A program made the translations under genes and the position numbers. A DNA stretch of 63,973 nt, counting the filler, from Trichosphaerium sp. ATCC 40318 (lineage: Eukaryota > Protista > Tubulinea): the NCBI GenBank assembly GCA_038496445.1. It is 3 parts of 3 records of this genome, joined end to end, with 100 filler letters (N's around TTAATTAATTAA, not from the genome) between each part and the next. Parts side by side here need not be neighbours in the genome. Positions count along the whole stretch, not along the records: positions 1 to 23,571 come from JALMLS010000080.1; 2 more parts are not named here. One strand, 5' to 3'. The notes beneath the pieces were generated by a model, which saw only the letters and a list, made by a program, of their open reading frames with translations, had not been told where the DNA came from and did not search any database. Below, piece after piece: positions 1,982 to 16,697 of the stretch (positions within the stretch are counted from its first letter, which is position 1; each line of letters starts with the position of its first letter).

Positions 1982-4553
<2,572 letters not shown>

Positions 4554-5075
4554 ACTGAGAAAATAAACAACAGTTTGATAACCATACCCTTTACCTATTA
4601 CACGATTCATCAATAGTCAATATTAGGACGAAGACACCAATGTCTCTTTAGCATAGCCCTTGATATTTACTGACCTGTCAGTTCCATCCACGGCCACATA
4701 GTACTATTAGCAAAATTACCACATCGATATGTGAGTGTTATTTATCAACGTAAACTCGTCCATGAACAACTATGTTATTAGCTTCGTTGCCCATTTTTTT
4801 TTCTTTGCAGTGCAAAGCCAGAAAAAGATTGTTTTAAAATTTCCACAGGCTTGCAGGAGAATAGAAACAAAACACAACTTTTTTACACTAATTCTTGTTA
4901 TTTTCTTACATACTTGAACAACCAGTCTTTATCAACTTCCTTATACTGTCTTTGCTAGCAAGTAATCAAAGAGCTGGTTACCATAATATTTGAACACCAC
5001 TATTAAGATTTGAAACGCTTATGTGGTAGTAACCTGTACGTATTATTCTGTATTTCAACTCACCATCGAACTTCG

Positions 5076-6109
5076 CTATGGAAAATATAAATTGTTGGCA
5101 TACTCATCAAATGGATTCGCATGAGAAGTATATTGAACAGCATCATTAAATTCCTGTCGTGATCTACCACATTTGACTTTAGTTCCCGCAACATAAATAA
5201 TATTAGCTCCAATGAGAGATTTTACGCCTTCATTTGAAACGTCAGTGAATTGTAGGTCAATGGTATGAACACCAGAAAGCGCTTTGATGCCTTCATCTGT
5301 GACTTTAGTATATGCAAGGTCAATGGTATGAACACCAGCAAGTGATTTGATGCCTTCATCTGCCACTATAGTGTGTTGTAGGTTAATGGCATGGACCCCA
5401 GCTAGCGCTTTGACACCTTCATCTGTGACTGAAGTACAACGAAGGTTAATGGTATGAACACCAGCAAGTGCCTTTATGCCTTCATCTGTTACTTCAGTAC
5501 CCTGAAGATCGATTATGTGAACTCCAGCAAGCGCCTTAATACCTTCATCGGTAATCCCAATCTCTTCAAGGTTAATAGTATGAACTCCAGCAAGTGCTTT
5601 GACTCCTTCATCTGTTACTGACGTCTCCTGAAGGTTAATAGTATGAACACCAGCAAGCGCCTTAAGGCCTTTGTCAGTTACTCTAGTACATCGAAGGCTG
5701 ATGGTATGAACTCCAGCAAGTGCTGCTATATGTTCATCAGTGACGTATACGCCACCAAGGTGAATAGTGTGAACGCCAGCAAACTCGTTTACTACACTCC
5801 GACCAAATAATGCGTGTAAATGTATTATGGTGTGCCTTAGAACACCAGAATGTTGTGTAACTGCTTTTACATCTTTTTGGCCTATTTTAACTCTAAAGTA
5901 CCCAATAATGTCATGAATAATAGAAGCAAATGTACGGCAGGTTTGACAAATAGCAAATCGAGTTGTTGTTGTTTTAGATACTATTAAAGCTAAAATCTCT
6001 GTAGGCAACTCCAATATACTTCTGATCTCGCTTTCAATACTGTTAGAACATGCAAACATACACTAATCGCTGTTTACCGTTTATTTCGAATATCTACGCC
6101 AATAGACAT
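5076..6109 (-). CDS. F-box + leucine-rich-repeat protein (21-aa LAGVHTINL..T.VTDEGIKA repeats)
   Basis: F-box-like ILELPTEILALIV...VCRTF-type segment, then about 9 tandem 21-aa LRRs. The likely true start is ATG 6109, with a 38-nt GT-AG intron at 6077-6040 (MSIGVDIRNKR|IESEIRSILELP). Confidence 0.85.
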
Positions 6110-7239
6110 CAATACAGTAGTTTGTAGTTAATAGCTACAATCAATGAAGCTACGTTTGTAGCTAAGAAAACTTCTTCATATTAAAGACTTAGCATGTTAA
6201 GTTAGGCTAAGTAGTCATCTGTAGCACAACACGGAGTACAAATTTTTGTCACGTGATATTTGTAATTTACAGTCTTTGCTAAAAACCTTTTTGATTGCGC
6301 CCGGCTTAATACCTGAGTATGGATAATTCAATTTACTCCCTTACAATCCATGCTGTCAGAACCTCCAACGCATATTTTTTCTTGACCGTATAAACAAAAG
6401 GTATACAAGCAACCATGGTTGTGAAATTGACACTTCATTTGGGAACACGTGGATTTGATTTAGGGAGACTGTACTTGACCGTTTAACTTAGGCGCACCTT
6501 GAAAAAACTCAAACGAAGCAGTATCGATGGGAAATAGGTTTGTTATGTTCACTTTTAATATAAACCGAGTTAAGACCCATAAACATGCTTACACATGATT
6601 TAGAAGTGTAAAGCTGGGAAAACCCTCCAACTGCGTCGAAAGCACCTCTGCCCCTTTTCTGACACTTCCTAATGAAATAATAACATTGATCGCCCAAATA
6701 TCTACCGATGATATCTCTGTGCGCTGAATAGGCTACAAGTCCTTTTTATGAGCCCCACACTGTCTCAACGAATATTTTTACACAATGTGATGCTATACAG
6801 AACGGTTTGAGGTTAAACAGATGGCCACATTGTGTTGTAGGGTTTTCTGTAAAAGTCCGAAAACTCATATTTTTTTTGTGCACTATAGCGTAAATAACAT
6901 AATTCTCCACGCAAACGAGTAATTATTACATCTTTGGCAATGAGCGCACGCTACGATACTTACGGTATGTTTTAATACAGCAATAATTAAGTACAGCCTC
7001 AACCTGCTTTAAAAGCACCTACCAGGCGTTAATAGCGCTGTTGTATTTATTTGCGATAGTTTTTTCACCCAACACAGGTTAAATAGAAGAAGCATACGCA
7101 AATGGTGTGCGTAGTGTAGATTTGATATCTGTGCGCAGCAAGACAAGCTCTTGTCGTGGCTAGAACTCTTTTTTTTTTCTTCAATTTCAATCACGTGATT
7201 TTCTGTTTGAAGAAACCCAAACATGCTAATGTAGTCGTA

Positions 7240-10200
7240 GGAAACTTGAAACCCCACGCATGTTGGAAATAATCCAGCTGTCCCTGGGATGCTGTTTTCA
7301 CTAGTTTACAGTTTGTTAGTGATATTTGCGTATGTGTTGTTCTATACACAAGTACTAAGAAAGTTTAGGTGATTCCCAACAACCCGACAGTACTCACATC
7401 TAACAACATAGATGGAAGTAGAAACACATTTATTCAGTTGTTTTTACAGCATTGCTACACAAAATATCCAAAGAGGAGGAAGGAAATAGAACATAACTAT
7501 GAGGAGCATCGCTGTGGAAAATATAGCCCTGATTTTAGTGTCTGTGAAATTCACAGCTACGTTAGAAGTGTTTGTGTTTCATTTCATGCATTTTCTAACT
7601 ATAACAGCGGTTGCAAATGTGAAGGTGAGCATAATAAACTATTGCCATCCGTGCTTCTCACACATCCAGATTACAGAGTGTTGCATCAGTTGTGCATTTT
7701 TGGAGAGCAAGATATTGAAGCAAAAATATGCAACTGGCTTAATAAACGTCTTTCAGTTTCAAACAACTGTCTGACTTGCAGTGAGGGAGGGTTTAAGGCT
7801 GCTAAGGTATGTAGCTTTATATTATTTTGAAAACAACCTAATTTGATAAAGAGTGTGACATTACCGGCTTTGATTACAGTGTATCCAAATCCCAATGTTG
7901 TTCAGGACATGGCCAAATTACCTAAGACTTTAAACTCCATGGAAGGTATGTAAAGACAGTTAGCGTTTGCACTTACATAAGCAGAACTTGGGAGGCAGCT
8001 TACATTTTGATGTGGCAGCCTAAACCGCATCCACATTTCGCAACATATGTGAATAACAATGGAACTTGGTGGTTTATTGATTGTATAACATCACTTCCTG
8101 TGCTATATTCAAAGCCTTTAACTAACACATTGAAAGGAAATGCCTCTAGGGCCCACAATAGTATGTGGAAAATACAGGTGGTTGTCTACAGAGGATCACA
8201 ACACACTGTATCATGTAAAGAACTGTACAAATTGCGCCCAGAGGCAAGTAATACGAATTGACCTGATAAGTGAAAGTGACAGTTTCAGGTATGTAAATGT
8301 TGTTCCATTGCTTACAAACATCAAACAGTGACTATATCTTCAGTGACGCTGATAGTGACGCTGATAGTGACGGGAGTATTCAATCAGATGTGTCTGGCAA
8401 TAGTGTTGAGTTGGCATTTACTTCCCAAAATCAAATGGAATTGCCACGGAATATAGAATCTTTTGGGCCAAATGCAGGTGTTCAAATTGTTCAAATATTG
8501 AACAAACAAACAGCGACAGAAGCAAAAAGAAACAAAAATGGCAATCACAAGTGGCTTCTTGAAGCAACAGTAAACACAAAAAAGGGTTCTCGTAGGTGTT
8601 TTGTGTGGGAATGCTATAGGTAAGTAATCTATTTTTTAAACCTCACATCTTGTTTTTCTAACCAACAATAGGTTTTAACAAAAAGTTATCTTGTAAGCTG
8701 TTAAAAAGACACCACTCATTGGCAAACAAATTTCCAATATCTGAAACACCTATAGTTACAACTATAAAAGGGCCAACTAAACTTCCAAGGCTTGTTGTAC
8801 AACGTACAATGTTAAAAATGAGGCACCAAGTACAATGGCCAACAAAAAAAGGTTCAAGACAGAAGGATTACTGTTGATGATACATTGTCTTAACTTCTGT
8901 CACAGAAACACCTTCTACAAGCTCATCAACCACTGCTTCACAGCCAACTGTTGCACCAACAACGGATGCTCCAACTATTGCTGCACACAACAACAGATGC
9001 ACCTAACTGGTACTTGCTTGATATTTTTTAGCTTTCTTTCTAACTGTGATAGATGCGCCAACTACACCTACAACTGCAGCCCCTACCACAGCCACACCAA
9101 CAACTGATGCTCTTACTGCAAGTACTCCAACAATAGAACTGCTAACAACAGCTTCAACTACAGATGCTCCTATCACCAAAACCCAGCTCCAACCGCCAAT
9201 GTACCTATGACTGAAGCTCCAACAACAAAAGCATCAACCACAATTTTACTTTTCTCCTAACAGTGATAGATGCACCAACAACGGAGGCTCCAACCACAGA
9301 GGTTCCTACAACTCCTGCGCCAACAACAGAAGCGCCAACAACACAGCATCCAACTACAATGCCACCAATGACGCCTCCACCAACTACAGAAGCACCTACA
9401 ACTGAAACTCCAACTACTGAGGCACCAACAACTGGTACTTGATTTATATTGTTATCTTTTTCCATCTAACAGTAATGAATGCACTAACTACACAAGCACC
9501 AAGCACAGAAGCACCAACAACTGCAACCCCTACCACTGATGCGCTAACAACGGAGGCTCCTACAACTGCAGCCCCTACTACTGAGGCTCCAACAACTGAG
9601 GCTCCTACAACTGCAACCCCTACAACTGTAGCACCTACTACTGGCTCCAACTACAGAAGCACCAACTACTGAGGTACCTACCACTGAAGCTCCTACAACT
9701 GTAGCACCTACTACTGAAGCCCCTACTACGGAGGCTCCAACTACAGGAGCTCCTACAACCGAAGCTCCAACTGCTGCTCCTACCACGGATGCACCTACAA
9801 CCGAAGCTCCAACGACAGAAGCACCAACTACAGAGGTTCCAACAACATTGGCGCCAACGACAGAGGCACCAACAACTGACGCACCAACAACTGAAGCACC
9901 TACAACTGTAGCGCCTACCACTGAAGCACCTACAACTGTAGCACCTACTACATTGGCGCCTACTACGGAGGTTCCCACGACTGAGGCACCAACTACAGTA
10001 GCTCCTACGACTGAAGCTCCAACGACAGAAGCACCAACGACTGAGGCTCCAACCACTGTAGTGCCTACTACAGATGCACCAACAACTGATGCACCAGTGA
10101 CAGATGCTCCAACAACTGAAGCCCCAACAACTGAAGCTCCAACAACAGAAGCACTAACGACTGAGGCTCCAACTACAGAAGCACCTACAACTGTAGCACC

Positions 10201-11990
10201 AACAAGTGGTACTTTGTATTTTACTTTCTAAAGCAACTAACTTTCTTTGTAGATGCTCCTACAACTGAAGTGCCTACGACAGAACCACCAACAACGGAGG
10301 CACCAACTACAGAAGTGAAGCTCCAACAACTGAAGCGCCAACCACTGAAGCTCCAACTACAGAGGCTCCAACAACGGAGGCTTCAACTACAGAAGCGCCA
10401 ACCACTGAGGCACCAACAACTGAAGCACCAACAACTGTAGCACCTACTACAGCAGCTCCAACAGCAGAAGCCCCAACTACAGAGTCGCCTACAACTGATG
10501 CACCAACAACAGAGTCACCAACTACAGCTACTCCTACAACAGCAGCACCAACAACTGAAGCTCCTACCACTGCAACCCCTACAACTGACGCTCCAACTAC
10601 TGAATCTCCAACTACAGAGGCTCCTACAACTGAAGCTCCAACTACGGAACCTCCAACGACTGAAGCACCAACTACTGATACTCCAACTACTGATGCTCCT
10701 ACAACTGAAACACCAACTACTGACGCTCCAACTGATGCACCAACTACAGAGGCTCCTACAACTGTAGCACCAACAACTGAAGTGCCAACAACTGAAGCTC
10801 CAACCACAGATGCACCTACTACTGAAGCACCAACAACCGTAGCACCAACTACAGATGCTCCAACCACCGAATCGCCAACTACTGAGGCTCCAACAACTGA
10901 ACCACCTACAACTGATGCGCCTACAACTGAAACTCCAACTACTGAAGCACCTACAACTGTAGCACCAACAACTGGTACTTTGTATTTTACTTTCCAAAGC
11001 AACTAACTTTCTTTGTAGATGCACCAACTACAGATGCCCCAACAACTGTTGCACCAACAACCGAAGCACCGACTACTGAAGTCCCTACTACAGAATCGCC
11101 TACAACTGATGCGCCAACAACAGAGGCTCCTACCACTGATGCTCCTACAACTGCTACCCCAACAACTGCGGCTCCAACAACGGAGGCACCAACTACTGAA
11201 ACTCCAACGACAGAGTCTCCAACAACAGAAGTGCCTACAACAGATGCTCCAACAACAGAAGCTCCAACTACTGAAGCTCCAACGACAGAGTCTCCAGCAA
11301 CAGAAGCACCTACAACAGATGCACCTACGACTGAAGTTCCAACTACTGAAGCACCTACAACTATAGCGCCAACAACTGGTACTTTGTCGTTTACTTTCTA
11401 TATGGGAACTTACCTTATTTGTAGAAGCACCAACAACAGCTACTCCAACGACTGACGCACCGACTACAGAGGCACCAACAACTGCTGCTCCTACCACTGA
11501 AGCTCCAACCACAGATGCGCCAACAACTGAGGCTCCAACAACAAACGCTCCTACCACTGTAGCGCCTACTACAGATGCACCAACAACAGAGGCTCCTACA
11601 ACGGAAGCGCCAACAACTGAAGCGCCAACTACTGAAGCTCCAACCACCGAATCGCCAACTACTGAGGCTCCAACAACTGAACCACCTACAACAGATGTCC
11701 CTATGACTGAAGCTCCAACTACTGATACACCTGCAACTACAACTGAAGCTCCTACTAAATCTCCAACTACAAAGGCTCAATAAATGGTACTTCCAACTTT
11801 ACTTTCTAGAACTAACTTTATTTACGGAGGCAACTACAATAGTACCTTCAAGTGCTTCATCAACTGCTGAGGTACCTTGTACAGATGCATCTACAACTGA
11901 TGCTTGGCTTCAACTAAATAAACTACACCAAAGACGCCTACTGCATCCAAAGAAGCTCCAAGGCTTTTACAAGGCACTATTTTTATGGCT
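7240..11990 (+). pseudogene. Degenerate spliced cargo gene: USP-like cysteine-peptidase domain followed by a long Thr/Pro mucin-like (APTTE)n region
   Basis: Cys-box-like WK*SSCPWDAVFTSLQ (~7264-7310), CxC/CxxC pairs, LPALITV..LPKTL, His-box-like PHFATYVNNNGTWWFID (~8030-8080), terminal IQVVVYR. Then pentapeptide repeats 8950-11780 with GT-AG introns. In-frame stops and frameshifts are present. Confidence 0.55.
8950..11780 (+). repeat. 15-bp tandem repeat array encoding APTT(E/D/V/A), interrupted by re-duplicated introns
   Basis: Repeating GCNCCNACNACNGAR units. Closely related introns (GTACTTTGT..TTTACTTTC..TTTGTAG) at 10209-10252, 10975-11018 and 11379-11424, with more diverged copies at 9010, 9435 and 11787. 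Confidence 0.95.
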
Positions 11991-13401
11991 ACTAAAAAAG
12001 CAATTTGCTAATTAAGATGATGCCGAAGATGGGTGTATTTATGTATTGTTTTAAGTGTAATTGTATATTTACATACTCGTTGGAGCCCTTTGTACATGGG
12101 TACCCAATATGGAAAGTGTGTTGGACGTGTAACATTGTCCGAAAATAAAATATGGTTTCTGTGAACACGAAAAAAACGCTGCGGATGCTGCTCAAATTTG
12201 TTTAAGATTGTGTACGAAAATAGGAGCGCTATGGACCAGTTAACATAGTCGCCTGGGTGTGGAGAGCAGGTTTAGACAAGTTTTAGACCAATTACTAAGA
12301 CTGGCGACTATTCAGCGCATGGAGATATACGATACAAGATAGTACAATTAAGTCACCTCTTCTCGGATATTATTCACGATAATGTTGGCTACATCAAAGC
12401 CACAATAACAACACGATTGGATGTTGACACGATATCACAATATGCAGGTGTTCTGAGACATACAAATATTGTTTATCTGTTACAAGAAGGAGAGCCTTTG
12501 GCTAAACTCTCAGGTGTTCATACGATAAAACTTGAGCAATGCAAACGTAACAGATGTTTCAGCTTTGGCTGGTGTACACACAATTAATTTGGCTGATACA
12601 AAAGTAAGCTGTGTTTCAGCTTTGGCTGGTGTTCACACCATAAACGTCAGTTACACAAAAGTAACAGACTCAAGTGTTTCGGATCTTGCTGGTGTACATA
12701 CAATCAATCTGGCAGGTATTAATGTACATGACTCTACATTAATAGCGCTTGCTGGTGTACACTCAATAAATCTCACATCATGTGACAGTATAACTGGAAA
12801 AGGCATTAGAGCGCTTGCTGGAGTCCATACTATAGATCTAAGCAATTGCCGTCCTCAAGACCCAAGTTCATATCAGTCATTGGCTGGTGTTCACACAATC
12901 TATTTGAGTAATACCAATATAAGGGATGATGACTTAAAAGCATTCTCAGGTGTACATGCCATAAGTCTTCATCTATGTAGTCAAATCTCAGATGATGGAG
13001 TTAAACATCTTTCAGGTATTCATACTATTTACCTTGGTGGTACTGGAGTAACAGATGAAGGGCTCAAAGCTCTCGAAGGTGTTCATACTATTTACTTATT
13101 TGACATGCCATTGGAACATAAAATCACCGATAAAGGGATAAAATGTTTGGCTGGAGTTCATACAATCCTAATCTCAGGCCTAAGTAAAGTAACAAATAAG
13201 GACATTGCAGCTCTTGTTGGTGTTCATGAGATTACAATAGAAAAAATGCCTAAAATAACAGAGAGTGGAGTTAGTGTATTGAAAGATGCAATTATCAATT
13301 TACAAGATCATTAATTGTCACTACATGTACCACGTGTCTTGCCTTATTCACACTTGTTCTCGGATACTCGTCAATAATTTCATGTGTTAATTGTTCAGTT
13401 A

Positions 13402-14440
13402 CAGGGCTGAAACTCAGCTAGGCATTGCCTTAAAAAATGATGCATATTCCTAACATTTGGCATTAGATGGCAAAATCAAGGCATTTGCATTTGGCAATGC
13501 CCAATAAAATAAGGCATTTTTACAAAAAGGCAATGCCTTCATCAAAAAGGCATTGATACCAGGCATTTTTGGGCATCTTTTGGCATTGCATAAAATCAGG
13601 TAATGCCTTGTATTGCATTTTTTGGCATTGCATAAAATCAAGTAATGCCCTGTATTGCAAGTACTTTATGCCTTTATTATGCCTTATTTTTTTAAGCAAT
13701 ATATGCCTTGTATTTTAATTCATATATAAGGCATTGCCTATACTATATCATAGGACTGATCACATTAAGGAAGTGGTTTAAGGTAAGTAACAGTCAAACA
13801 ACTTTTACACTTTTTTTTTCACATCACCTACTGACGTTTTATATAGACAGGCACCTAGCGCTCTTAGTAATTCATGAAATTAGACGAAACCACCGCCAAA
13901 CGAACCGCAGCACCCTATTTCATCTACAACAGTAGTAGGAGTGAACTCCGCGATATTTCCAGGACCGCGGAATTCTAACACTACAAGGTAAGTTTTTTTT
14001 TTTTTTTTTTCTACACCATCTCATATTTTCTTTAAGGTTTTTTCAAATGTGGACTTAGGAGTTTTGTGTATTGTATGTGTACTGTATTATAAAATAAATA
14101 ATTGTGTTATTACCTGAAAATGCCCTGGTTTATTAGGCACTGTAGACTATGATAATGCTTCCTTTTTGCCTTCAAAATAAGGCATTGATGCATGAGTTAT
14201 GCCCTAATTTGAAGGGCATAATTCTTAAAAATATGCAGGCAAAACCATTGCAATCTTGTGTACCAGATGCAGGCATTTTTCATCAAATATAAGGCATTTT
14301 TGGAGCAAAAAATAAGGCATTGCCCTGTATTTGCCTTTTTGAATGAGGCAAAAACTAGGCATTTTTGTAAAAAATAAGGCATTATTTGGATGAAAATGCC
14401 TAGGCATTGTCCAAAAATGCCTTGTTGAGTTTCAGCCCTG
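13402..14440. mobile_element. Non-autonomous TIR DNA transposon (MITE-like), CAGGGCTGAAAC termini, copy A
   Basis: TIR CAGGGCTGAAACTCA...TGAGTTTCAGCCCTG, TTA on both flanks, dense subterminal AGGCAT(T)/AATGCCT motifs, no transposase ORF. Confidence 0.92.
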
Positions 14441-14479
14441 TTATAGTCCTTGATTATTCGAGAAGACTACATAACAATT

Positions 14480-15582
14480 CAGGGCTGAAACTAAACAAGG
14501 CTTTGCCTTAAATATGAAGGCATTTTTTTAAAATCAGGCATTGATGGCAAAAATCAGGCATTTAAAAATGGCAATGCCTGATCTTGCAAAGGCAATGGCA
14601 ACAAAGGCAAAAATCAGGCATTGAAATAAGGCTTTGTTGGGCATTGCCTTAATTGTTGCAAAGCCTTGTTTTTTTTAGGCAATGCCTGCCCTAGTTTTTT
14701 TATGCATTGCCAGCCTTAAATTTACAGGCACCAATTAGGCATTGGTTGTGTACACATTGTACATTAAGGATACATTGGTTTAAGGTAAGTTTCCACCACA
14801 CCAACACTTCCTAAACATTTTTTTCCATTTACTACTGACGTTTTATATAGACAGCGTCACCATGCGCTTAGTATTTTATGGATTCTAACGAAACCGCCGC
14901 CATTCGAACCGCAGCACCCAAATGCACCTACAACAGGAGTAGAGGTACTTTAAACCATTTTTCCAGTCCACGAAAATTATACCAATAATTTGTTAATTTT
15001 TTTTTCTAGCTAAAGGTTTTTTTTCACATGGAGGCCATTGAAGTTTTTTGTGTTTTGTGTACTGTACTTTAATAAATGAATCACTATTGTATGCCTATAT
15101 AAAGCCTTGTTTTATGAGTATATGGTGCCTGAGTTATGCCCAAAAATTGAGGGCAAAAATGCCTCATTGTTGCATTAAAAATGAGGCATTATTGGACCAA
15201 CAATGCAGGCTATTTTAAGGCTAATTAGTGAACCAGTTGCTTGCTATTTGGCCCAAATATGAGGCTCTAAAGCCCAAAATTACAAGGCAATGCCTCATAT
15301 TTGCTCATTTTTTTTGGCAAAAACAAGGCAATTTGGTGAAAAATAAGGCTGGCAATGCATAAAAAAACTAGGGCAGGCATTGCCTAAAAAAAACAAGGCA
15401 TTGCAACAATTAAGGCATGGCCCAACAAAGCCTTATTTCAATGCCTGATTTTTGCCTTTTTTGCCATTGCCTTTGCAAAATCAGGCATTGCCATTTTTGC
15501 ATGCCTGATTTTTGCCATCAATGCCTGATTTTAAAAAAATGCCTTCATATTTAAGGCAAAGCCTTATTTAGTTTCAGCCCTG
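14480..15582. mobile_element. Non-autonomous TIR DNA transposon with ~238-bp TIRs, CAGGGCTGAAAC termini, copy B
   Basis: 14480-14718 and 15344-15582 are near-perfect inverted repeats. Same 13-bp tip and AGGCAT motifs as copy A, and a homologous core. Confidence 0.95.
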
Positions 15583-15754
15583 ATACGAGAGATCAAGGCT
15601 GGCAAGAGTATATGACTGTTATATGGTTGTATTGTTTCAATCACTAATGGATTACATACCAAGATGTGATGATGGAATAACAATGACTCTGTCACTGTCG
15701 TCTATTGTTAATTGGACAAGAAATCTTGAAAGGAAAAAAGAAACAAACCATATT

Positions 15755-16697
15755 CAGGGGTAAAAATATTCTCAGCAAATAAATAGCATTTGCCAGCAAA
15801 ATTTACTGGCAAATCATAAGATTTTGCTGGCAAAAAAATCCATTAAATTCAGGGTTTTTGCTGGTTTTTTTGGCAAACATTACTTGCAAATATCGTCATT
15901 TGCCAGCAAATATCCATGGTATTTGCTGAAAATACACAGTAAAAAAAAACACATTTGACAATAAAACCAGTCAGGAGTTTCAATCAATGCACAAGTTATT
16001 TTATTTAAATCACATGCACAAATACAAAATCACATTACAATGTACATAGAGTGTTTTTCTGTTGGGTGATTGGAATATTTCGCCATATGATTCTATACCA
16101 TGTACCCCCCTGTAAAATGGTGCTGCGCATCTAATGCAAGTGGTTTCATCAAAATCCGTGTATTACTAAGAGCTACAGAAGTATGTAAATATAAATCGCT
16201 CGAAAATAAATAAATTAATACTTACATACCTCCGGACGCCTGCGGAAGGCAGGTACTTCCATAATACTTTTGTTGTTAATGTAAATTGGTCTTGCGGTCA
16301 CAGGGAGCTTCGTTTGGTTAAATTCCATCAATTACTAAGAACGCTACATACCTTTTAATAGTGATCATCCAAAATCGTTTTGGGCTCACATTGAAAAAGT
16401 ATGTCAAGTCAAAGAGTTTTTTCTTGGGAATATTATAGCTGGTGTTTTTTGGCCAACTCAGCAAAACCATGGCATTTGCCAGCAAATGGCAAATATTTGG
16501 ATTTGCTGGCAAATGACAGTTCTTGTTAATTTGCAAAATGGCAAAACCATGGCATTTGCCAACAAACAGCAAATATCAAGATTTGCCATCAAATGACAGT
16601 TTTTGCCATTTCAGTAAAAATGGCAAAACTCAGCATTTGCCAGCAAGTGGCAAATATCAAAATTTGCCAGCAATTGCCATAGATATTTTTACCCCTG
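15755..16697. mobile_element. Non-autonomous TIR DNA transposon, CAGGGGTAAAAATAT termini, copy C
   Basis: TIR CAGGGGTAAAAATAT...ATATTTTTACCCCTG. 2-bp TT duplication; removing the element plus TT restores CAT ATT GTT GTT GTA. Subterminal TTTGCCAGCAAA repeats. Confidence 0.92.

Follow-up and report, generated by a model that had tools for sequence, protein, structure and literature searches.

A non-coding unit under apparent selection inside related, CMC-like mini-transposons of Trichosphaerium

Introduction

It is commonly assumed that a non-autonomous transposon requires nothing beyond its ends. Among short interspersed elements (SINEs), the CORE-, V- and Deu-SINEs, which are retroposons transcribed by RNA polymerase III (Pol III) and shared across wide taxonomic ranges, keep a central non-coding domain while their head and tail parts are exchanged or diverge, and the function of that domain is unexplained. 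Here we describe a non-coding unit of about 158 nt inside DNA transposons of the tubulinean protist Trichosphaerium sp. ATCC 40318. It came to notice as a motif in a window of 63,973 nt (the whole stretch of DNA analysed, filler included), whose positions 1 to 23,571 come from JALMLS010000080.1 of assembly GCA_038496445.1. The parallel with the SINE domains is conceptual: the carriers here are of the cut-and-paste type and are seen in one genome only.

The closest described system is that of the Acropora CMITEs, which are inverted-repeat transposable elements of miniature size (MITEs) with a 75-bp internal region that is more conserved between families than their terminal inverted repeats (TIRs); the origin of this region is unknown, and a role in transposition was proposed for it (Wang et al. 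2010, PMC2872659). The likeness is that several MITE families have an internal region that outconserves arms and TIRs, with only the extreme terminal bases in common. CMITEs differ in being about 100 bp long around their 75-bp core, with TTAA duplications and piggyBac-type CCYT ends, whereas the elements here span 0.8-1.1 kb and have CA..TG ends, 2-3-bp duplications and long subterminal repeat arms. The unit here also differs from the CMITE core in its exon-like borders, its poly(A) signal and its duplication in two families, and the two have no sequence similarity. The parallel is one of analogy, not of membership. In Stowaway MITEs, related to Tc1/mariner, internal sequence boosts transposition, as was shown experimentally according to the account of that work given in PMC2872659. 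They resemble our case in having internal, non-TIR sequence that bears on mobilisation, which for the unit here is only a possible role.

Results

Carrier elements

The assembly analysed has 70.3 Mb in 642 contigs, and the window was taken as one contig of it. Reading was extended to 48 loci around genome-wide motif matches, and the profile scan covered 270 kb of sampled loci, the terminus-pair scan 290 kb of sequence. The unit was found in five families of elements, A to E, and in one fragment, F:

13402..14440, + strand: family A element, 1039 bp, with TIR CAGGGCTGAAACT, GGCATTGCC-type subterminal repeats and TTA flanks
14480..15582, + strand: family B element, 1103 bp, with inverted ends of 245 nt, related to A
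15755..16697, - strand: family C element, 943 bp, with TIR CAGGGGTAAAAAT, TTTGCCAGCAAA-type subterminal repeats and a TT target duplication
L033:3235-4294: example of family D, which has at least 78 candidates at 98-100% identity
L040:4587-5400: example of family E, which has about a dozen candidates at 74-96% identity
L041:1293-1347: fragment F, truncated, with a weak profile match (E about 1e-3)

The carriers are non-autonomous, MITE-like TIR DNA transposons. Elements of families A to E measure 0.8-1.1 kb, their TIR pairs agree at 13-16 of 16 bases, and they contain no open reading frame (ORF) beyond 30-112 codons and no transposase gene. Family A has at least 134 genomic candidates; 35 of the 40 that were scored are full-length at 94-100% identity, and the rest are truncated or split. 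B-type elements make up about 45 of the first 100 exact pattern matches. Family C has only 4 genomic copies (94-100% identity), none of them longer, with all 7 candidates scored.

The elements appear recently active. At L037, a D element (5211-6268) is nested within an A element (4411-6476), and comparison with uninterrupted A sequence reveals a clean empty site with a TT duplication. Because D is nested in A, the two families were active in overlapping periods.

Elements A, B and C are adjacent at window positions 13402-16697, separated by spacers of 39 bp and 172 bp. The cluster sits between an LRR gene and the next gene and resembles a local insertion hotspot. Elsewhere in the genome, many A copies sit within ORFs of long interspersed elements (LINEs) or Gypsy elements.

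Homology of the unit

The first-pass annotation of the window had claimed five copies of a 55-bp motif. The 16-mer TAGCGYTCTTAGTAAT is exact at 13856-13871 (+) and 16331-16346 (-) and has 3 mismatches at 16162-16177 (-). In all, the window holds 4 matches to it against 0.5 expected, one of which (656-671) is due to chance. Copy B lacks the first bases of the 16-mer and keeps the motif from CTTAGTA onwards. Four homologous copies were confirmed where they had been placed, at 13856-13914 (+), 14862-14923 (+), 16114-16178 (-) and 16283-16348 (-).

An nhmmer profile, built from 10 units of five families with the four window copies among its training sequences, gives these copies E-values of 1e-16 to 1e-19 when the core is scored and of 1e-29 to 1e-43 over the full 158-nt unit. 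When families were left out, a profile made only from A, B and E detects the units of both C and D (E 1e-15 to 3e-3). Likewise, one made only from C and D detects the A, B and E units (E 7e-17 to 1e-11). Since profiles with families left out still detect the others, the homology of the unit is real.

The fifth copy, a looser one placed at 12177-12231 (-) in a piggyBac-like element, did not survive. No significant profile match lies there, the best being E = 11 (12222-12246) and E = 0.8 (13 nt, 12289-12301), which is chance level. No piggyBac transposase domain is present on the window contig, and 11 matches to it lie elsewhere in the genome.

Genome-wide, the 16-mer with at most 1 mismatch has 64 matches versus 1 for a reversed control, and a looser 28-nt pattern has 244 versus 56 for its control. 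Every extended match in the 48 loci lies within a TIR element, as do all 60 profile matches in the 270 kb. The matches to the 16-mer (at most 1 mismatch) outside elements are the short word only, without extended similarity. Pattern scans of metagenome and viral collections found nothing related, the matches being confined to the search pattern itself.

Anatomy and conservation of the unit

The motif is the best-conserved, 5′ part of the unit, and the conserved stretch exceeds 55 bp. In every family the unit starts 308-436 nt from the 5′ TIR. The window has four units:

13837..13994, + strand: unit in A (nhmmer E 7e-43; cross-family profile E 7e-17)
14841..14998, + strand: unit in B (nhmmer E 1e-35; cross-family profile E 1e-11)
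16209..16362, - strand: unit 1 of C (nhmmer E 4e-33; A/B/E-only profile E 4e-13), noted earlier as the copy at 16288-16346
16040..16195, - strand: unit 2 of C (nhmmer E 6e-29; A/B/E-only profile E 7e-10), noted earlier as the copy at 16119-16175

The invariant core, which equals the TIR tips in conservation, reads CTTAGTAAT in A (13863-13871) and CTTAGTATT in B (14867-14875). When the deep groups (A/B/E, C and D) are compared, only the unit and the extreme termini align, the unit being the sole internal stretch to do so in pairwise blastn. Examples in element coordinates are A 455-521 with C, B 388-439 with D, C 339-588 with D 344-593, and D 322-415 with E.

Families C and D each have two units in tandem, and the first and second units of C resemble the first and second units of D, respectively. 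As the units pair in this way, the tandem duplication is older than the split of C and D. All four of these units keep the invariant CTTAGTAW and several further fixed positions. That both old duplicates were retained, though the arms no longer align, is the strongest sign of selection at the sequence level. The same layout is seen in families of very different age, with copies at 74-96% identity in E, 94-100% in A and 98-100% in D. Similarity of the unit tracks family relatedness, as the A, B and E units are mutually closer and C and D share the two-unit form. The unit is non-coding, inherited by descent in related families and under apparent selection.

Relatedness and classification of the carriers

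The motif had been described as shared by transposons with different termini. Their subterminal repeats do differ, being GGCATTGCC-like in A, B and E, TTTGCCAGCAAA in C and GGTATATACC in D, arranged as short repeats in arms of 240-430 bp in all families. The termini, on the other hand, are homologous: CAGGGCTGAAACT (A and B), CAGGGCTAAAACT (E), CAGGGGTAAAAAT (C) and CAGGTCTAAAAA (D) have 10-11 of the first 15 bases in common. They have the form CAGG..T.AAA, and all families end in 5′-CAGG...CCTG-3′. The target duplication is also common to them. It is 2 bp in 19 of 26 A/B copies, versus about 1.6 by chance, and 3 bp in some others, and the duplicated dinucleotides vary (TT, AA, TA, GT, CA, TG and others).

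Because the termini, duplications and layout of the carriers are related, the premise of unrelated transposons fails, and the motif is shared among families through common descent within one group. What stands of the earlier proposal, a cis-acting segment retained across transposon families, is a non-coding segment apparently selected in several families. Its portability between unrelated families is not supported, as the carriers share the form of the termini, 2-3-bp duplications, size and internal layout.

The CACTA/Mirage/Chapaev/Transib (CMCT) group is recognised in the literature by CA..TG termini together with duplications of 2-5 bp (PMC12730594), and the carriers have both. They fit the CACTA/Mirage/Chapaev-like (CMC/CMCT) group, with membership judged by terminal features only. 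Subterminal repeat arrays are a further likeness to the CMC group, and the difference is that the termini here begin with CAGG, not CACTA. The layout resembles internal-deletion derivatives of En/Spm-type elements such as dSpm. Searches with Pfam Transposase_21 and Plavaka for the cognate DDE transposase, which in this group has C(2)C and H(3-4)H motifs, gave no genome matches, and none in any control either.

Other assignments were rejected. An Ac-like CAGGG terminus might suggest hAT, which duplicates 8 bp (range 5-8 bp) of its target, and this is ruled out by the absence of an 8-bp duplication in all 26 copies (0/26); hAT dimerisation-domain matches are located elsewhere in the genome. ISL2EU and PIF-Harbinger have AT or TWA duplications and termini starting with GG, A or G (AT and GG for ISL2EU; PMC4482050), and they are ruled out by the variable dinucleotide duplications and the termini starting with CA. 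An introner-like reading, with splice signals in the TIRs, was also dropped, in that splicing would leave 10-11 nt behind and the elements are ten times the length of host introns.

Tests for coding potential and RNA structure

The unit is not coding, and no support was found for its being the coding 3′ end of a transposase gene: there is no conserved frame, and there are no protein homologues. When the six frames were tabulated, stops occurred in every frame, in 3 to 9 of 9 units, which bears out the earlier remark that no reading frame is common to all copies. In A, B and the window's C copy, an ATG past the core opens short ORFs (34-40 codons). In its place, E, D, C unit 2 and other C copies show ATT, ATC, ATA or ACG; the frame contains a TAG in E, and D, the youngest family, is without a start. 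Reverse frame 0, which has the fewest stops, contains a conserved-looking block of 24 residues in ORFs of 11-62 codons (112 in one D unit). Its profile, run against 1.84 billion protein representatives, found only spurious translated tandem repeats. The two halves of the conserved block disagree in their period-3 signal.

Nor did the suggestion of a structured RNA hold. Applied to the 10-unit alignment, RNAalifold finds 0 pairs for either strand, and Rfam gives no match on any unit at E up to 10, with no tRNA, 5S, 7SL or U6 match. ARAGORN finds no tRNA-like fold, resemblance to A and B boxes being loose and no T-stem possible. Rfam matches fall only on palindromic subterminal repeats; one of them, to MIR2646 at 16464-16685 (46 bits versus a gathering score of 245), is due to those of C and marks no miRNA gene. 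A resemblance to C/D-box small nucleolar RNA, U6 or 5S was rejected by eye, with no terminal stem or D box, and has no Rfam support.

Gene-like signals around the unit

Introns in this genome are of the GT..AG type, short (45-100 nt), with TACTAAC-like branch sites. Around the unit, the gene-like signals are strand-specific, all lying on one strand. YAG stands directly 5′ of the core in 9 of 10 units. Before it comes AT- and pyrimidine-rich sequence in which TTAAC, TTTAC or TACTGAC resembles a branch site. Families A, B and E have, another 60-100 nt upstream, a donor of the form GTAAGT or GTAGGT that follows a short possible first exon, so that the upstream-intron layout of A is also seen in B and E. 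Past the unit there is a further donor, GTAAGT or GTATGT, in A, in C unit 1 and in F. In C, a stretch of 56 nt between the units runs from GTATGT to CTGTAG, and unit 2 begins right after this acceptor-like site. AATAAA occurs 162-230 nt after the last core in A to E, and also after the partial unit of F, with one or two AATAAA per element. The corresponding features of the window are:

13783..13858, + strand: predicted intron 5′ of the A unit (donor GTAAGT at 13783, branch-like TACTGAC, AG at 13846 or 13858)
13988..14036, + strand: predicted second intron in A (GTAAGT, T18 run, TTTAAG end), with its donor-like site 126 nt past the core
14093..14098, + strand: AATAAA of A, 230 nt past the core
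15071..15076, + strand: AATAAA of B
16000..16005, - strand: AATAAA of C, 165 nt past the second core

Search for an autonomous partner

No autonomous element bearing the unit was found in the searches made. The coordinates of hAT (22), DDE_Tnp_4 (10) and piggyBac (11) domains do not coincide with any listed motif match. In whole-element DNA searches, no longer relatives appeared among all 7 C candidates or among the best 40 each of 134 (A), 78 (D) and 113 (E) candidates. A de novo scan of the 290 kb for CAGG...CCTG pairs up to 10 kb yielded, besides the short families, nothing but unrelated structures, a large palindrome in L046 and an element with long TIRs in L040 among them.

Among transposases elsewhere in the genome, four near-identical piggyBac copies (C84:135172, C405:9877, C65:165684 and C124:92916) share the same three in-frame stops, which are introns or a common defect. 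Identical hAT and Harbinger transposase matches occur in triplets.

Other features of the window and the sampled loci

The window has two F-box/LRR_6-type genes, at 5079-6062 (-) and 12529-13311 (+). A third F-box-like ORF at L041:919-1245 adjoins the truncated unit, and the gene family is possibly expanded. At 8800-11780, a long run of 15-nt (5-residue) repeats encodes a mucin-like protein rich in T, E, A and P; the gene is interrupted by short introns, with a GC content of up to 47-49% and strong skew. An ORF fragment at 3099-3431 (+) matches the N-terminal domain of glycosyl hydrolase family 32 (E 6e-15).

The sampled loci contain LINE and Gypsy fragments. The palindrome of L046 (14-1568 and 5439-7024) is a large inverted duplication with arms of ~1.5 kb and 84-98% complementarity, unrelated to the motif. 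Another repeat type, at L040:1098-3320 and L033:2900-3235, has long inverted ends starting with TCAGGTCTACTAGTACG, internal CGTGCCCAAAACGTG repeats and a 265-codon ORF without a Pfam match. Two tRNA-like stretches with GGGATTTGAACCCGGG T-arms, recognised by eye only, lie about 180 nt apart downstream of an E element (L035:3700-3990, -).

Discussion

Across the families, a homologous unit with the anatomy given above occurs in related carriers, and it has neither coding potential nor RNA structure. Our best explanation, which we hold tentatively, is that the unit is a selected, vertically inherited, non-coding module resembling a leader exon, with a predicted cis role in related CMC-like elements. 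In En/Spm elements, an untranslated leader exon and then an intron lie just inside the 5′ arm. The unit could similarly be the leader exon of an element-borne transcript made by RNA polymerase II (Pol II). The predicted Pol II-type cassette would run from a short first exon through an intron and one or two copies of the unit to AATAAA, placed between the two subterminal-repeat arms of related non-autonomous elements of ~1 kb. The unit would have been passed down as the families diverged, maintained by selection, and would most likely act in cis for the element. Just past a splice acceptor, the CTTAGTAW core could bind a protein or a small nuclear ribonucleoprotein.

Several points weigh against this explanation. 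Transcription, splicing and the cis-acting role are all predictions read off the DNA. The donor after the unit is lost in B and E, and D unit 1 is without the TATA-like or branch-like box present in the other units. About half of the units offer splice-like signals on their other strand as well, and some of these short signals arise by chance in AT-rich DNA. An origin of the unit as a transposase-gene leader is unproven, no autonomous element with the unit having been found, and what is left between core and AATAAA is similar in all families, about 90-160 nt.

A wider claim would make the unit a dedicated 'passport', a cis module of the whole CMC-like non-autonomous group that was retained throughout the divergence of the families, even in duplicate, and serves mobilisation or a spliced non-coding RNA of use to the elements. 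This we regard as rather doubtful.

The alternative that survives best, possible though somewhat doubtful, is a passive relic. The unit would derive from the transposase genes of related autonomous masters, as their 5′ leader or first coding exon; selection would act on those masters alone, and each MITE family would be an independent internal deletion too young to have lost it. The order of exon, intron, unit and AATAAA fits a gutted gene, the A and D copies are young (94-100% identity), and A, B and the window's C copy have an ATG past the core. That ATG, however, is not conserved, and E has an in-frame stop. No longer relative exists among the scored candidates, and the hAT, Harbinger and piggyBac transposase matches adjoin no listed motif match. 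Moreover, the old family E (74-96%) is already short, and leftover lengths are alike in all families. For these last two reasons, one ancestral short element fits better than repeated independent deletions, and less weight is placed on a pure relic.

It is unlikely that the unit works at the DNA level, independently of transcription, as a transposition enhancer or a binding site for transposase or a host factor; any family of the group would then need it for efficient mobilisation, which would be another kind of 'passport'. The core does match the conservation of the TIR tips, which are the only part whose need in cis is established, and two copies are kept in C and D. The coral CMITEs are alike, and their authors proposed such a role for them (PMC2872659); internal MITE sequences can enhance transposition, according to work as cited there. 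Yet the orientation of the unit relative to AATAAA and the splice-like signals is fixed in every family, which a pure DNA site does not need. The conserved block has no dyad symmetry, and no cognate transposase is known.

Capture of host fragments is known for CACTA-type and other DNA transposons. The unit, with its exon-like borders, might be such a captured host exon (transduplication), or might have spread between families by template switching in gap repair and so be truly portable. We consider this very improbable: no copy was seen outside transposons, with 60 of 60 profile matches in elements over the 270 kb of sampled loci, its similarity follows family relatedness, and pattern scans of metagenome and viral collections found nothing related.

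Least probable of all, and already weakly refuted, is a small RNA gene (Pol III type or resembling small nuclear RNA) or a micropeptide cargo. For it speak the AT-rich TATA-like box that most units have some 16-27 nt ahead of the core, T-runs (T4 to T18) about 125-140 nt downstream and the 34-40-codon ORFs in A, B and one C copy. Against it, no consensus structure, Rfam match on the units (E up to 10) or tRNA-like fold exists, D unit 2 is without the T-run, the start of the ORFs is unconserved and, in D, absent, and the reverse-frame profile finds only spurious proteins.

We return to the tentatively preferred leader-exon-like module and what it would mean. Across families that differ in age, an oriented internal non-coding segment matches the tips in conservation, and some of the families carrying it are very young (98-100% identical copies), with no recognisable transposase source. 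If the unit is only a relic of a transposase leader, the case is ordinary. If the 'passport' reading is true, the unit would be a cut-and-paste counterpart of the unexplained central domains of SINEs. The system is tractable, since the elements were apparently active recently. Should the unit prove necessary in cis, it would reveal what a parasitic mini-element has to carry, besides its ends, for its movement or expression.

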